Shown here one piece after another: positions 41,090-62,800 of a DNA stretch of 64,000 bases. Under the pieces are notes generated by a model, which was not told the DNA's origin, searched no databases, and was given only the letters and a program-made list of their open reading frames with translations. The DNA is from Macrostomum lignano (Eukaryota): assembly GCA_002269645.1 (NCBI GenBank), contig NIVC01001861.1, positions 1 through 64,000 of the forward strand, read 5' to 3'. Every line of letters starts with the position of its first letter. Positions within the stretch are counted from its first letter, which is position 1. Position numbers and translations under genes: made by a program.

Positions 41090-43244
41090 TCAATCAGGCG
41101 CTACAGAGGGCATCAGGCCTCTGATGTACAAGTTGCCCGCGCTCTTCGTCCGCTTTTTCTTGTTTTTCTTAGCCTTCTTCGGGCGCGCAGGCTCTGCATC
41201 TACATCGGGCAGCTCCTCAGATTCTGCCGCCACCTCTGAGAGAGAATCCAGTTGCTTCTGTTTCTTCTTCCGCTTCTTAGACGATTTCTTTTGCTTGGAG
41301 TCGTCATCGTTGCCGTCGGAGGCTGCGGTCGTAGAAAAAGCGCGCAGTAACAGGTCAGCAGCTCGCCGATGCCTGCGATTAGTGATTTTTTTATTAGAGG
41401 TGGCAGCATACTGTATGTGGCACTGATGGATCAGGTATATGATAGCACAGACAGACAGACAGACACTAAGACATTAAGACAGACACATAGACAGACAGAC
41501 AGACAGACAGACAGTCAGACAGACAGACACTAAGACATTAAGACAGACACATAGACAGACAGACAGACAGACAGACAGACAGACAGACAGACACTAAGAC
41601 ATTAAGACAGACACATAGACAGACAGACAGACAGACAGACAGTCAGACAGACAGACAGACAGACACTAAGACAGACAGACACTAAGACAGACAGACACTA
41701 AGGGCCGTATGCAGAAAGCTCTGTCTAGGGTAGTCCGGTCATGAAAAGCTAGTCTAGACTAGGATTTGGTATGCAGAAACACAAAGTTAGACCAGTCTAC
41801 TATAGCACAACTAGGCTAGCTAGACCATAGACTATAGACTGAACTACCCAAGTCCGGACTAGCTAGTCTGGATTAGGCTTTCTGCATACGGCCCTAAGAC
41901 AGACAGACAGACAGACAGACAGACAGACAGACAGACAGACAGACAGACAGACAGACAGACAGACAGACAGACAGACAGACAGACAGACAGACAGTCAGAC
42001 AGACAGTCAGGCAGACAGACAGACAGTCAGTCAGACAGACACAGACACAGACAGACAGACAGACAGACAGACAGACAGACAGACAGACAGACAGACAGAC
42101 AGACAGACAGACACTAAAACACTAAGACACTAAGACAGACAGACAGACAGACAGACAGACAGACAGACAGACAGACAGACAGACAGACAGACAGACAGTC
42201 AGTCAGACAGACATACAGACAGACAGACACTAAGACACTAAGACAGTCAGACAGACATACAGACAGACAGACAGACAGACAGACAGACAGACAGACAGAC
42301 ACTAAAACACTAAGACACTAAGACAGACAGACAGACAGACAGACAGACAGACAGACAGACAGACAGACAGACAGTCAGTCAGACAGACATACAGACAGAC
42401 AGACACTAAGACACTAAGACAGTCAGACAGACATACAGACAGACAGACAGACAGACAGACAGACCAACCTGTCATCCGAGCCCTCTAGATGTGGCTGCTC
42501 ATTTCTGGCCGGCTGTCCCTCCTCCTCAGCCGGCCGACCCCGGCGCTTCTTTCTTCTTCGAGCTGGCACCGCCGGACCCGCCGACTCTTCCACCGGATTG
42601 TCGGCTTCATCAGCCTCGGCCGGAGCCGTCACCAGCGCCGACGCTTCAGCCGCAGCTTCGTCAACGTCGGTATCGTCGATTCGCGACGGCAGCCGCTTGC
42701 CGAGCCGGCGGGCCGCCGCGCAGGCGGCTCCGTCAGAGGGCGGAAATTCCGTGAGGCGACGCCGCAGACTGGCGTAGACTTCGGCGGCAACGGCGGCGCC
42801 GGCCAAGGCCAGGACGCGACAGCGGGCCAGGACAGCCAGCAGCACAGTGTAGAGGCGAACCAGGTGGCCCATTGCCAGGTAGGGCAGCAGCAGCCGGGCG
42901 CAGCGGTCCGCAGCGGGCTGGACTTCAATCAGGCGACTGCGACGGTTGCGCAGCAGGAGGAGCGCCCGGACAGCGGCGGCGCGGTTCGGGCGTTGATTCG
43001 CGTCGATCAACGAGCGGACAAAGTCGCGCAATCGACGCCGCTCGTCGTCATTTCCGTTGTCGATAATAGCGCGACGGAATTTTCTGCGAACTTTGGCGAA
43101 CGCGCGCCAGTGCAGAAAATGGCGCTGCACGTGGCAGTACTTGACGTGCAGCTGGTCCATGAGGCGCAGCTCTTGGCCAGCCACTGGACAGTCCAGCGAC
43201 TCCGCTAGGCGAAGAAGCGATTTCTTAAAGTCGGCGGCCGATTG
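41090..43244 (-). CDS. NEPRO/Rmp1 (DUF4477)-like nucleolar RNase MRP-associated protein; exons 43244-42469, 41372-41090; no genomic ATG at the 5' end
   Basis: [30 protein letters not shown] and [28 protein letters not shown] resemble the two conserved helical blocks of NEPRO as I recall them. Lys-rich acidic nucleolar-type tail; phase 2 GT-AG intron; about 352 codons. Confidence 0.6.
41447..42463. repeat. (GACA)n microsatellite filling the intron
   Basis: Direct observation. Confidence 0.97.
41702..41894. mobile_element. PIF/Harbinger (Tourist-type) MITE, 193 bp
   Basis: Perfect 18 bp TIR gggccgtatgcagaaagc / gctttctgcatacggccc flanked by a TAA duplication (41699-41701, 41895-41897). Confidence 0.9.
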
Positions 43245-43279
43245 CTGCAATGAAATTCATTTAGTTGAAATTCTGTATG

Positions 43280-43652
43280 TGTCTAAGGTCTAGAGAACTG
43301 TGTCTCAGGTCTAAGAATGTGTGTCTCAGGTCTAGGGGTCTGTGTCTCAGGTCTAGGGGTCTGTGTCTCAGGTCTAAGAATTTGTGTCTCAGGTCTAGGG
43401 GTTTGTGTCTCAGGTCTAGGGTCTGTCTCAGATCTAGGGTCTGTGTCTCAGATCTATTGTCTGTCTCAGATCTAGGGTCTGTCTCAGATCTAGGGTATGT
43501 ATCTCAGATATAGGGTATGTGTCTCAAGTCTAGGGTATGTGTCTCAGATCTAGGGTCTGTCTCAGATCTAGGGTATGTGTCTCAGATCTAGGGTATGTGT
43601 TTCAAGTCTAGGGTATGTGTCTCAGATCTAGGGTCTGTCTCAGATCTAGGGT
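43280..43652. repeat. Minisatellite, about 18-20 bp unit (tctagggtatgtgtctcaga)
   Basis: Tandem copies between DCTD and the NEPRO-like gene. Confidence 0.9.
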
Positions 43653-59445: not shown

Positions 59446-59825
59446 CAAGGGTACGCTGTAATACAATAGACACAATGCTGGATCATGCCGCAGTTTTATT
59501 GAATTCATAAGCCCAAATTCTAAACAGTTAAAGTTAATTATAATTGATTTATAAGTCAATCGGCACCGGCCACCAGTATAGCACGCAGTTTAAAAGCCTT
59601 CCTAACAGTTGATAAAATAACTTTTGTAGTCTACGAGGCTAGCAAGGCTGATCACAGGATAAGCCACAAGAGTACAAGCGCTGACCGCACTTGGAGACAG
59701 GTGTAGACTTTTATATGGCAAGGCAAGCTGGTCAATCCAGCTAGTAGGCAATGTCCAATACAGCTGTGCACAAAATCGATAGTCTATGGCCAGCCCCGCT
59801 GACTCCGCTGGCGGCAACGGGGGTT

Positions 59826-62800
59826 TCAATAGTACATGTAATCGTCATCCGAGAACATATAGTGATCATCAGAGTCGCCAAAATAATCAAAGAAGTCGCC
59901 GAAGCCGCCACCGTACATGCTGCTCAGGCTGTCGTCATCGTCGTCATCGTCGCCGTCTCCGTTGTCATCGTCGTCGTCACTGAACCAAGGCGGCAGGCTG
60001 TGGCGCATGCCGAAGCGGAAGCCGAACGGATTGCCGAAATCCGGATCTTCGTCGCTGTCCACCGAGCTGTCATTGTTGGCGTCTGAAGAGTCCAGAACGC
60101 AGTCAACATCAACGCCGAATTCCAGGCGGAGCTGGGCCAGACGCTGGAGAGATCTTCGTCAGCGGCGGAGTCTTCTTCATCATCGGGGAGGCGCTGCTCC
60201 CGCCGCTGCGACCGATTCGAAGCCGGGCGGCCGGAAATCGGTCGAAGCCGTCCGACAGAGCCGCTCGCCTGGCCAGAGCGGCAGCCAGCTGGCCGGGCCT
60301 GGCCAAATCCGGACACTTGGTCAGGTCTAGACTGACGAGAGAGCGACACCTGGCCAGCAGGATTGCCAGGCCGCGAGAGTCTAGCCTCGAGCATCGGACG
60401 GCCAGTAGCTCCTGTAAATTGGCGCGAATTCAAAAAGTTTTATTGACTAGCTTTGTTGCTTGAGTTTCCATTTTTGCTTCCCCTATCATAATAGGCTTTC
60501 TTATTCTAGCCCCTTCCCGAAGTACTAGAGAGCCTCAGCACCGTTCATAGCCAATAGACTTAGTAGACTACTAATACATAGACTTAACAAGTAGTATACT
60601 CGTAAAATTATGGTAGCAAGTAGTATAAAAGCTGCTCTAGTGTCGCGACTATAATGTGCCCTGAACTAACTTCTTTCCCTCTCTCTGTCTGCGTGATTAT
60701 TTTGCTCCCTGCTTCATTGCTTCTTTCTGATTGGCTGCCAGTCTTAGCCTCTCCCTTTCCTTTCTTTCTTGCCTTACATTTATACTCGTGACGTTTATCT
60801 CTTATCCTAAACTTTTATATTCACCCTCCTTATCTCTTCGAACCCCATTCCGTGGCTTCAACCTCCTTATCTCTCCGACCCCATTCCGTGGCTTCAACCT
60901 CCTTATCTCTCCGACCCCCATTCCGTGGCTTCAACCTCCTTATCTCTCCGACCCCCATTCCGTGGCTTCAACCTCCTTATCTCTCCGACCCCCATTCCGT
61001 GGCTTCAACCTCCTTATCTCTCCGACCCCCATTCCGTGGCTTCAACCTCCTTATCTCTCCGACCCCCATTCCGTGGCTTCAACCTCCTTATCTCTCCGAT
61101 CCCCTTCTCGTGGCTTCAACCTCCTTATCTCTACGATCCCCATTCCGTGGCTTCAACCTCCTTATCTCTCCGATCCCCTTCGCGTGGCTTCAATCTCCTT
61201 ATCTCTCCGATCCCCTTCTCGTGGCTTCAACCTCCTTATCTCTCCGATCCCCTTCTCGTGGCTTCAACCTCCTTATCTCTCCGATCCCCTTCTCGTGGCT
61301 TCAACCTCCTTATCTCTCCGATCCCCTTCTCGTGGCTTCAACCTCCTTATCTCTCCGATACCCTTCTCGTGGCTTCAACCTCCTTATCTCTCCGATCTTC
61401 TTCTCGTGGCTTCAACCTCCTTATCTCTCCGATCCCCTTCTCGTGGCTTCAACCTCCTTATCTCTCCGATCCCCTTCTCGTGGCTTCAACCTCCTTATCT
61501 CTCCGATCCCCTTCTCGTGGCTTCAACCTCCTTATCTCTCCGATCCCCTTCTCGTGGCTTCAACCTCCTTATCTCTACGATCCCCATTCCGTGGCTTCAA
61601 CCTCCTTATCTCTCCGATCCCCTTCGCGTGGCTTCAATCTCCTTACCTCTCCAACCCTCATTCCGTGGCTTCAACCTCCTTATCTCTCCAACCCTCATTC
61701 CGTGGCTTCAACCTCCTTATCTCTCCAACCCTCATTCCGTGGCTTCAACCTCCTTATCTCTCCGACCCCCATTCCGTGGCTTCAACCTCCTTATCTCTCC
61801 GACCCCCATTCCGTGGCTTCAACCTCCTTATCTCTCCGATCCCCTTCTCGTGGCTTCAACCTCCTTATCTCTCCGATCCCCTTCTCGTGGCTTCAACCTC
61901 CTTATCTCTACGATCCCCATTCCGTGGCTTCAACCTCCTTATCTCTCCGATCCCCTTCGCGTGGCTTCAATCTCCTTACCTCTCCAACCCTCATTCCGTG
62001 GCTTCAACCTCCTTATCTCTCCAACCCTCATTCCGTGGCTTCAACCTCCTTATCTCTCCAACCCTCATTCCGTGGCTTCAACCTCCTTATCTCTCCGACC
62101 CCCATTCCGTGGCTTCAACCTCCTTATCTCTCCGACCCCCATTCCGTGGCTTCAACCTCCTTATCTCTCCGACCCCCATTCCGTGGCTTTACCAAGGACG
62201 ACTTAAGTAGAAGGACGGGAAACCTCGTTTCTTAGAAAATTTTAGAAGGCAGTTTTTTCCCGAAAAAATACACCACGGAGATAGGAAGTCTTCATTTTTA
62301 AGCACAAAAATTGTTATTGCTTTTGATAGGAACGGCGCCCTCTGATTTTTCCATTAACGCCCTTAAATCATGGGTATTAATGTACTAATGTACGTACAAT
62401 AAAAATAACATAGAATCCTAATTTTCTGAACGAAAAGCTTTACGAGTATGAATATCAATAGAGCAATAAGAAAGGCACAAAATAGCAAAAGATGAACATT
62501 GGATCTGCCTCCTATCAAAAGCAATAACAATTTTTGTGCTGAAAGAATGAAAATTTCTTATCTCCGTGGTGTATTTTTCGGAAAAACATGCCTTCAAAAA
62601 CTTTCTAAGAAACGAGGTTTCCCGTCCTTCTACTTAAGTCGTCCTTGGGCTTTACACTGTTTAGTCGTAAAAGCAGATTTCTGTACTTCCGTAGCACAAT
62701 GTAAGCGTCCAATACTGCATAATACAGAAGCCTTACAAGAATCAGTTTGCTTTTATCTGCTGCATCAGGCAAAGTACCCGTACCTAAAGTACACCTACAG

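Follow-up and report, generated by a model that had tools for sequence, protein, structure and literature searches.

A large LRR protein gene (paralogue B), a dCMP deaminase gene (DCTD) and a gene for a NEPRO-like nucleolar protein (the NEPRO-like gene) in the flatworm Macrostomum lignano are likely to form, in that order, one polycistronic run resolved by spliced-leader (SL) trans-splicing, in which the terminal AUG of the SL would supply the start codons. A tandem paralogue of the first gene (paralogue A), lying upstream, is probably also a member of this head-to-tail run. The genes lie in the first 64 kb of scaffold NIVC01001861.1 (the window), all of them on the minus strand (Table 1). Leader-supplied start codons are a mechanism already documented in flatworms, and the present cluster is an ordinary example of it.

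M. lignano has a single 35-nt SL whose 3' end is ATG, in keeping with the statement in the original prediction that flatworm leaders end in AUG; trans-splicing affects about 30% of its genes, some 15% lie in operons, and its trans-acceptor motif is [T/C]TNCAG (PMC8629364). Operons in this species are recognized by a repeat-adjusted distance of <1 kb (mode ~100 bp), raw spacer lengths being inflated by tandem repeats (PMC8629364). In Schistosoma the SL AUG is an established initiator, according to the passages of PMC9851317 and PMC12582326 that relate the work of Cheng et al. (2006), and a figure legend in PMC10468722 remarks that the SL ATG is probably a start codon in Macrostomum.

Table 1 Features of the cluster (window coordinates; a slash marks a splice junction)
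Feature	Position	Strand	Remarks
Paralogue A, large LRR protein gene, 3' part	59826-64000	-	tblastn of P0121: 63998-63831, 63669-63361; stop TGA 59828-59826
AATAAA poly(A) signal, paralogue A	59495-59500	-	
A-to-B spacer, 3945 nt	55550-59494	-	3115 nt tandem arrays, ~830 nt unique
A-to-B tandem arrays	58252-59445; 55623-57543	-	(GATA)n; 22/23/46-nt units
Trans-splice acceptor AG, paralogue B	55550-55551	-	tttccag/GCT CAG CAG
Paralogue B, large LRR protein gene	46308-55549	-	9 exons; introns all GT-AG
Paralogue B exons 1-5	55549-54546, 53854-53064, 52715-52529, 51880-51605, 51253-51172	-	
Paralogue B exons 6-9	50746-49977, 49658-49374, 49091-48774, 46972-46308	-	
Cis intron 5, paralogue B	50747-51171	-	donor TCA/GTGAGT, acceptor tttgtacag/TGG; 24-nt tandem array 50786-51039; AATAAA 51096-51091
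CCC run, 1-nt frameshift, paralogue B exon 6	50043-50045	-	CCCC in paralogue A and homeologous copy
AATAAA poly(A) signals, paralogue B	45298-45303; second 45619-45624	-	
Paralogue B-to-DCTD spacer, 320 nt	44978-45297	-	161 nt are a 33-nt tandem array (44991-45151); acceptor aattccag/, AG 44979-44978
DCTD, single coding exon	44435-44977	-	180 codons + stop; no genomic ATG before Met27
AATAAA poly(A) signal, DCTD	43731-43736	-	AATATA in homeologous copy
DCTD-to-NEPRO-like spacer, 486 nt	43245-43730	-	379 nt are a 20/38/78-nt tandem array (43275-43653); acceptor cattgcag/, AG 43246-43245
NEPRO-like gene	41090-43244	-	exon 1 43244-42469, exon 2 41372-41090; stop TGA 41092-41090; ATTAAA 41017-41012
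NEPRO-like intron	42468-41373	-	mostly (GTCT)n

Gene content of the run

Four genes occupy positions 41090-59826: the 3' part of paralogue A, whose start lies outside the window at record position 71306, paralogue B, DCTD and the NEPRO-like gene. The original prediction had listed five genes here; their co-orientation holds, but a 'big' gene and an 'F-box' gene turn out to be a single nine-exon gene, paralogue B, and the supposed spacer from 51091 to 50747 is part of a cis intron. The GTGAGT donor at 51171 joins 50746 in frame, and therefore there are four genes rather than five, three free 5' ends (55549, 44977 and 43244) rather than four, and the AATAAA at 51091 is intronic. We rejected 50746 as a gene 5' end on this ground and because the paralogue proteins P0121 and P0123 read continuously across the junction (...CVLLIDP/CDDTNNK...ITRPAAS), the homologous junction of paralogue A being a plain 116-nt GT-AG intron (L003 16590-16705) in annotated mRNAs. 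The 'F-box' label is itself weak, its Pfam score of 11.7 bits lying below the cutoff of 20.5. Paralogue B, which has no separate GenBank model, encodes 1458 aa after insertion of one base into exon 6, where the frameshift is either an assembly error or a lesion specific to this copy.

It is distinctly unlikely that paralogue B comprises two cistrons, whether always or as an isoform, with 'big' ending inside intron 5 (stop at ~51112, AATAAA at 51096) and a separate LRR/F-box mRNA produced by SL addition at 50746. A transcript left unspliced at the 51171 donor would indeed reach a stop after 20 codons and the AATAAA 16 nt further on; the frame opens in phase 0 at 50746, an in-frame ATG at 50677 is present in paralogue B but absent from paralogue A, and flatworm acceptors are often common to cis- and trans-splicing (PMC12582326). 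However, the strong donor and its acceptor preserve one continuous 1458-aa frame, the annotated mRNAs of paralogue A treat the homologous junction as a cis intron, and GTACAG at 50746 falls outside the [T/C]TNCAG motif. The three copies that we compared carry an unchanged acceptor at this site and no SL footprint.

Reading frames that open at acceptors

At 55549, 44977 and 43244, a phase-0 open reading frame starts directly after the AG of a TTNCAG acceptor. An AG followed by a phase-0 open frame is found at 50746 as well, and back to the nearest upstream in-frame stop (12 codons away at 55549, 105 at 50746, 58 at 44977 and 4 at 43244) there is no in-frame ATG at any of the four sites. Three of the four 5' ends proposed to be of SL type stand, and 50746 is a cis acceptor. 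At those three, the AUG of an SL would lie in the reading frame as the sole AUG upstream of conserved coding sequence.

The first genomic Met does fall inside conserved sequence in DCTD and the NEPRO-like gene, as had been suggested. The Pfam PF00383 alignment to DCTD starts at residue 21, so that Met27 (HFMAVA) lies inside the domain; the alignments of two distant homologues of the NEPRO-like protein, both passing the NEPRO_N cutoff, begin at its residue 13 or 24, and Met29 (RLMDQL) comes after that point. Paralogue B of the LRR gene also lacks a start codon in the genome, and an in-frame Met is not reached until codon 62 there and codon 285 in paralogue A; dN/dS between the two is nevertheless 0.39, both across exon 1 as a whole and across its first 60 codons.

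The annotation behind the GenBank CDSs made use of SL-read peaks and SL-trimmed transcripts (PMC5730564). These CDSs are 5'-partial and start at the acceptor or at most 9 nt from it: exactly at 43244 for the NEPRO-like gene, at the acceptor for P0123 ('ADSQ') and for the paralogous DCTD PAA69426.1 of L002 ('DPDSQ'), and 6 and 9 nt past it, respectively, for the window's own paralogue A and DCTD.

The absence of a genomic start codon, combined with phase 0 immediately after the AG, points to the terminal AUG of the SL as the probable initiator. Trans-splicing of the 35-nt SL (...ATTGCATG) onto the acceptors at 55549, 44977 and 43244 would form the mRNA 5' ends, and the predicted products would be M-AQQQVQ... 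(1459 aa) for paralogue B, M-EPDSQ... for DCTD (181 aa, the size originally proposed) and M-QSAAD... (353 aa, that is 352 aa plus the SL Met) for the NEPRO-like gene. A collection of 15 billion proteins contained none of these M-prefixed predicted sequences.

Leader bases in paralogous assembly copies

Unexpected and direct support for SL addition comes from paralogous copies in the assembly, in which terminal bases of the SL stand at the junction. In the homeologous copy L005, the paralogue-B junction (24165-24170) reads TGCATG/, the 3' end of the SL, in place of TTCCAG, and this accounts for the only 3 mismatches to the window in 1094 nt. At the NEPRO-like junction, CATG/ replaces GCAG in L004 (3 of the 4 mismatches in 836 nt), and L002 has GATG/. 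At these two junctions, then, the final 2-3 mismatching outron bases have been replaced by terminal bases of the SL, most likely a trace of polishing, since the Pilon polishing of the assembly used RNA-seq (PMC5730564). The DCTD junction has no such footprint in three genomic copies, all with an identical acceptor.

Spacing and alternative readings

Minus-strand AATAAA occurs seven times in 41000-60000, against 2.9 +/- 1.7 in mononucleotide shuffles, ending at 59495, 51091, 45298 and 43731 and also at 45619, 54872 (coding) and 41390 (intron). The signals reported ahead of acceptors at 51091, 45298 and 43731 are correctly placed, although the first is intronic. With tandem repeats located by TRF and subtracted, the spacers shrink to ~90-160 nt before DCTD and the NEPRO-like gene and to ~830 nt between paralogues A and B, the latter close to the 1-kb threshold of the published operon criterion and all of them within it. 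Some 90-160 unique nt together with a tandem array is the published operon signature; spacing and orientation thereby point to a single promoter and a single polycistronic precursor as the most likely arrangement, from which coupled 3'-end formation and SL addition would release the genes. Functional coupling of the cluster's genes is speculation.

Alternatively, SL trans-splicing and the SL AUG might serve all three genes while each is transcribed from a promoter of its own, located in the 3' UTR of the gene upstream or in the spacer; the precursors would then be monocistronic and carry outrons, or the arrangement would be a 'hybrid operon'. Of the genes that are trans-spliced in M. lignano, about 60% do lie outside operons (PMC8629364), and unique AT-rich sequence makes up ~700 nt of the A-to-B spacer (58250-57545). 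We nevertheless consider separate promoters fairly unlikely: the unique gaps from poly(A) signal to acceptor before DCTD and the NEPRO-like gene fit the ~100 bp operon mode, and the Sushi gene downstream offers a contrast, lying beyond a gap of 5 kb and having an ATG of its own and a TATAAAA. Far less probable still is a start in a cis-spliced upstream ATG exon, at the first Met or at a non-AUG codon, with no role for the SL AUG. The earlier statement that no ATG exon in the spacers is followed by a credible donor is broadly correct, but candidates exist by motif alone, at 45740-45687 with donor GTAAGT and within the 44098-44290 repeat with donor CAG/GTGAGG at 44084. Both sit in repeat arrays or in the 3' UTRs of upstream genes, specify peptides of low complexity and appear in none of the annotated, RNA-seq-based models. 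Starting at the first Met would remove conserved domain residues from DCTD and the NEPRO-like protein and 284 codons under purifying selection from paralogue A, and the SL-terminal bases in the paralogous copies directly adjoin the first codon.

Relation to known SL systems

An SL-resolved run with leader-supplied start codons closely matches the operons described in the same species and assembly (Wudarski et al. 2017, PMC5730564; Ustyantsev & Berezikov 2021, PMC8629364), accounts in which this cluster is not individually described. Co-orientation, TTNCAG acceptors, spacers of ~100 nt after repeat subtraction and repeats that inflate the raw distances are all shared; there is no difference in kind, the A-to-B spacer (~830 nt unique) lying near the criterion's upper limit. 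The genes are likewise conserved and proliferation-related: M. lignano DCTD genes Mlig008437.g9 and.g17 (v3 names, not tied to this scaffold) carry the flag TRANSSPLICED and are enriched in neoblasts (PMC5816591 supplement).

The SL AUG and 'slORFs' of Schistosoma mansoni (Cheng, Cohen, Ndegwa & Davis 2006, J Biol Chem), so far as PMC9851317 relates them, share with our cluster an SL ending in AUG, a phase-0 acceptor, the lack of an AUG in the genome and coding sequence that is already conserved ahead of the first genomic Met. That work drew on cDNAs and translation assays, whereas the present case is built from sequence, the boundaries of annotated CDSs and footprints in the assembly; unlike there, all cistrons of the run, including one for a 1459-aa protein, would depend on the SL AUG. 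With the SL2-type operons of Caenorhabditis elegans the run would share formation of the upstream 3' end followed by SL addition ~100 nt on, but C. elegans has specialised SL1 and SL2 leaders that donate no AUG, whereas M. lignano has a single SL and spacers padded by tandem arrays.

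Start codons probably donated by the spliced leader

Published work on Macrostomum lignano describes a single 35-nt spliced leader (SL), CGGTCTCTTACTGCGAAGACTCAATTTATTGCATG, whose 3' end is AUG; about 30% of genes are trans-spliced, about 15% lie in operons, and the trans-acceptor motif is [T/C]TNCAG (PMC8629364). The SL AUG is established as an initiator methionine in Schistosoma (Cheng et al. 2006, as cited in PMC9851317 and PMC12582326), and is remarked on for Macrostomum (PMC10468722). The window lies on scaffold NIVC01001861.1 of the M. lignano Mlig_3_7 assembly (GCA_002269645.1), where the database entry matched by its dCMP-deaminase (DCTD) ORF is encoded. 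Against this background we examined a minus-strand run consisting of two paralogues (A and B) of a large leucine-rich-repeat (LRR) gene, DCTD and a NEPRO-like gene, with no opposite-strand gene between them. The original prediction had drawn five genes here, with four visible 5' ends at 55549, 50746, 44977 and 43244. All four sites are, as it described, preceded by AG (a slash marks such junctions below) and open in phase 0, with no in-frame ATG between any of them and the nearest upstream stop, and the minus-strand AATAAA signals end at 59495, 51091, 45298 and 43731, where it had placed them. This signal occurs seven times on the minus strand of 41-60 kb, compared with 2.9 +/- 1.7 in shuffles. 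The DCTD poly(A) signal (AATAAA, window 43736-43731) reads AATATA in the homeologous copy (~11120 of L002, a stretch of scaffold NIVC01001325.1).

The acceptors at 55549 (tttccag/), 44977 (attccag/) and 43244 (attgcag/) fit the published motif and put the SL AUG in frame, with no genomic in-frame AUG upstream; the acceptor at 50746 (tgtacag/) does not match the motif. The gene count has to be revised: three of the four 5' ends stand, in a run of four genes, and 50746 is a cis acceptor. The deduction was otherwise largely right, its faults being the gene boundary at 50746, an over-confident "F-box" label and a speculative idea that the genes are functionally coupled.

GenBank annotation of M. 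lignano drew on RNA-seq "transcriptional units" divided wherever SL reads peaked or a poly(A) site lay, and on mapped de novo transcripts trimmed of the SL (PMC5730564). Three 5'-partial GenBank CDSs open at an acceptor: that of the NEPRO-like gene exactly at 43244, that of the homeologous DCTD (PAA69426.1) at "DPDSQ", and that of P0123, an annotated LRR paralogue protein, at "ADSQ" directly after ttgcag/. The models for the window DCTD and paralogue A begin 9 and 6 nt past the acceptor, probably through clipping in transcript mapping. Both M. lignano DCTD genes are flagged TRANSSPLICED and neoblast-enriched in the supplement of PMC5816591, under v3 names that are not mapped to NIVC01001861.1. 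Together, the 5'-partial CDSs at AG/, the DCTD flag and the SL-terminal bases seen in other genomic copies (described below) are indirect but convergent evidence that the downstream genes are SL trans-spliced. More generally, adding the SL Met can complete 5'-partial M. lignano CDSs in GenBank.

The gene names Mlig009803 and Mlig030630 and the scaffold name are not mentioned in the literature supplements and full text searched; DCTD was found there under v3 names only. The SL-Met-prefixed forms of DCTD and the NEPRO-like protein (MEPDSQ..., MDPDSQ... and MQSAVDF...) were absent by exact look-up from a collection of 15 billion proteins, in which the clusters around the looked-up proteins hold only NCBI and UniRef members.

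Coding sequence ahead of the first genomic methionine

DCTD scores 92.1 bits against Pfam PF00383 (dCMP_cyt_deam_1; cutoff 25) and is 59-66% identical to animal DCTDs over about 90% of its length. Because PF00383 aligns from residue 21, its first methionine, Met27, falls inside the domain, in agreement with the claim that this residue lies within conserved sequence. A RxDYLxWxxYFMAVA segment common to animal DCTDs reaches upstream of the Met27 equivalent, and 44977 is the only in-frame acceptor among the nearby AGs.

For the NEPRO-like protein, a direct match to NEPRO_N (PF14780) is sub-threshold, reaching 10.5 bits where the cutoff is 24.9. A HMMER search of 1.8 billion representative proteins matched it to two distant homologues, P0135 and P0136 (E = 8e-6 and 7e-5), which themselves score 38-42 bits on NEPRO_N, above the cutoff. 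Their alignments begin at query residue 13 or 24, before Met29 is reached, so the first methionine lies within conserved sequence in this gene too, as had been proposed. UniRef names the versions from the ML2 assembly "DUF4477 domain-containing". The C-terminus of the annotated protein, PAA63237.1 (312 aa), is frameshifted and stops at TAG 41200. A two-exon model that runs to 41090 encodes 352 aa, has a lysine-rich tail and agrees with the 349-aa homeologous protein and with the UniRef versions. We considered whether ".g2" in BOX15_Mlig009803g2 denotes the second gene of a transcriptional unit and dropped this reading because the suffix numbers near-identical copies with a common cd-hit prefix; NEPRO-like g1, g2 and g3 lie on three scaffolds. 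Two proteins from other M. lignano assemblies, P0132 (UniRef A0A1I8IPT0, 536 aa) and P0134 (469 aa), fuse DCTD to the NEPRO-like protein, and were set aside as transcript evidence, being gene-predictor products (ML2 assembly). Their splice joins a point inside the 3' end of DCTD to the NEPRO acceptor, which means that in those assemblies AG directly precedes the first NEPRO codon.

The large LRR gene likewise has a long reading frame ahead of its first in-frame Met, reached at codon 62 in paralogue B and only at codon 285 in paralogue A. Exon 1 is nonetheless open and under purifying selection: dN/dS is 0.39 across 312 codons, and has the same value, 0.39, when just the first 60 are compared. 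Phase, the missing ATG and conserved pre-Met coding suggest that the ORFs at 55549, 44977 and 43244 are of a putative SL-AUG-initiated type. Every cistron in the run would then be translatable only via trans-splicing, including a 1459-aa protein, the paralogue of which has no genomic Met before codon 285.

A cis-spliced junction at 50746

Used as query in a homology search, the "big" protein matches nothing but two paralogues from M. lignano, P0121 (1103 aa) and P0123 (1108 aa), both of which continue unbroken from the large N-terminal part into the LRRs (...FFDKWINPEEIMQPF...CVLLIDP/CDDTNNK...ITRPAAS...). At the junction equivalent to 50746, paralogue A (in L003, the same scaffold beyond the window) carries a 116-nt GT-AG intron without repeats or a poly(A) signal, and the Met that could serve as a start in the 50746 model is ATA there instead of ATG. 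In paralogue B, the exon at 51253-51172 ends in ...VLLIDS, followed by a consensus GTGAGT donor in frame with 50746. The continuity of P0121 and P0123, the paralogue-A intron and the in-frame donor together make 50746 a cis acceptor rather than the 5' end of a gene, and reduce the run to four genes and its free 5' ends to three. The AATAAA at 51091, taken earlier for a spacer signal, is therefore intronic in paralogue B; AATAAA-bearing introns full of tandem repeats can pass for intergenic spacers.

Our model of paralogue B has nine exons (55549-46308), all GT-AG, and encodes 1458 aa after one base is restored: 50045-50043 reads CCC, against CCCC in paralogue A (window ~63900) and in the homeologous copy. 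The missing C shifts the frame of exon 6 by 1 nt, and reflects either a mistake in assembling the homopolymer or an inactivating mutation specific to this copy. Paralogue B has no GenBank model of its own. The P0121 model is chimeric, passing from paralogue A (record 71300) through a ~14-kb jump to exon 7 of paralogue B, where it terminates at a frameshifted stop at 49001; the homeologous scaffold carries the same kind of model (P0123).

The "F-box" label is not borne out by Pfam, whose F-box model gives 11.7 bits where 20.5 is the cutoff. LRR models also score below the Pfam cutoff in the large protein, and its N-terminal 780 aa have no Pfam match and no homologue outside M. lignano. The trans-acceptor of paralogue A is preceded, at a distance of 65 nt, by a foldback (L003 9312-9929, record ~71372-71989) that is probably a foldback element or MITE; its two 197-nt arms are 98% complementary and 224 nt apart.

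SL bases at junctions in other genomic copies

We compared the window with two other genomic copies, NIVC01001325.1 (stretches L002 and L005) and NIVC01000359.1 (L004). At the paralogue-B junction, TTCCAG/GCT in the window is TGCATG/GCT in L005; these three differences, each to an SL base, are the only ones in 1094 ungapped nt. The NEPRO-like junction reads GCAG/CAA in the window, CATG/CAA in L004 and GATG/CAG in L002. Over 836 positions the window and L004 disagree at four, and at three of these (-4, -3 and -2) L004 has the SL base. In these copies the SL bases remove the AG acceptor and yield an apparent genomic ATG. The DCTD acceptor is unchanged in 3 of 3 copies, as is the cis acceptor at 50746 in all copies compared, and no other TTGCATG site in the window and L003 has a long ORF behind it.

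It seems likely that these replacements are a systematic RNA-seq polishing artefact at Mlig_3_7 trans-splice sites, because the assembly was polished by Pilon with RNA-seq mapped by STAR (PMC5730564). On the simplest reading, reads starting a few bases inside the SL would have aligned with mismatches and, in some copies, replaced the final bases of the outron. The AG ahead of the first NEPRO codon in the P0132 and P0134 assemblies is consistent with such an artefact. The same replacements in L005, L004 and L002 could also be read as germline rewriting of the last outron bases by reverse-transcribed, SL-bearing mRNA, which we consider very improbable; if true, an SL-donated start would have become a genome-encoded ATG with loss of the acceptor, and these genes would be caught leaving SL dependence. 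Artefact or not, the copies show that RNA exists in which ...CATG abuts GCT CAG and CAA TCG, bearing out the SL junction and frame predicted at 55549 and 43244. The polishing artefact, the reading we prefer, is a side observation of practical interest: the Mlig_3_7 reference seems to hold SL bases over some trans-splice acceptors, and users should beware of spurious ATGs and lost AGs.

Coordinates of features at the locus (window coordinates equal record coordinates 1-64000)
Feature	Position	Corresponding window position	Strand	Source
SL-base site, paralogue-B junction	L005 24165-24170	55555-55550
SL-base site, NEPRO-like junction	L004 9997-10000	43248-43245
SL-base site, NEPRO-like junction	L002 11573-11576	43248-43245
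P0121 span	record up to 71300 (L003 10001-32300)	49001-64000	minus	GenBank model
NEPRO-like C-terminal region		41090-41372	minus	two-exon model

Probable operon organization

Intercistronic distances in M. lignano operons have a mode of about 100 bp that emerges only when tandem repeats are left out of the count, and 1 kb is the threshold for calling an operon (PMC8629364). Raw distances from poly(A) signal to acceptor are 320 nt (DCTD), 486 nt (NEPRO-like) and 3945 nt (A to B), and fall to ~160, ~107 and ~830 nt, respectively, once TRF arrays are removed. The DCTD and NEPRO-like spacers thus fall on the published mode, and the A-to-B spacer is still below 1 kb. From this arrangement we infer one precursor RNA for the cluster; separate promoters feeding short outrons, gene by gene, are a live alternative. 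The next gene downstream, encoding a 608-aa Sushi-domain protein with a signal-peptide-like start (MLLLLYHLTAALLWLI), is separated from the run by 5 kb and opens with an ATG of its own (35822, minus), with TATAAAA upstream at ~35915. These features mark it as a conventional neighbour under a separate promoter, which would make the NEPRO-like gene the last of the unit. Searches of the 64-kb window turned up no SL RNA gene, tRNA or Rfam family.

The cluster works like, and belongs to, the class of M. lignano SL operons, and belongs also with the flatworm genes, known from Schistosoma, in which the SL AUG is the initiator methionine. The mechanism is already known and the cluster is a new, well-resolved example of that kind, a textbook-quality case in which two known flatworm features, start codons donated by the SL and an operon resolved by it, occur together.

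Tandem repeats

Across 41447-59445 (19 kb), nearly every intron and spacer contains a tandem array distinct from the others, some 20 in all, with units of 4 to 46 nt and lengths up to 1.9 kb, and array copy number varies between genomic copies of the locus. Large arrays also occur at 27539-28990 and 29427-30968, one C/A-rich with 30/61-nt units and the other with 38 copies of a 41-nt unit at 94% identity; the C/A-rich array explains why GC skew is -0.66 at 28-30 kb.
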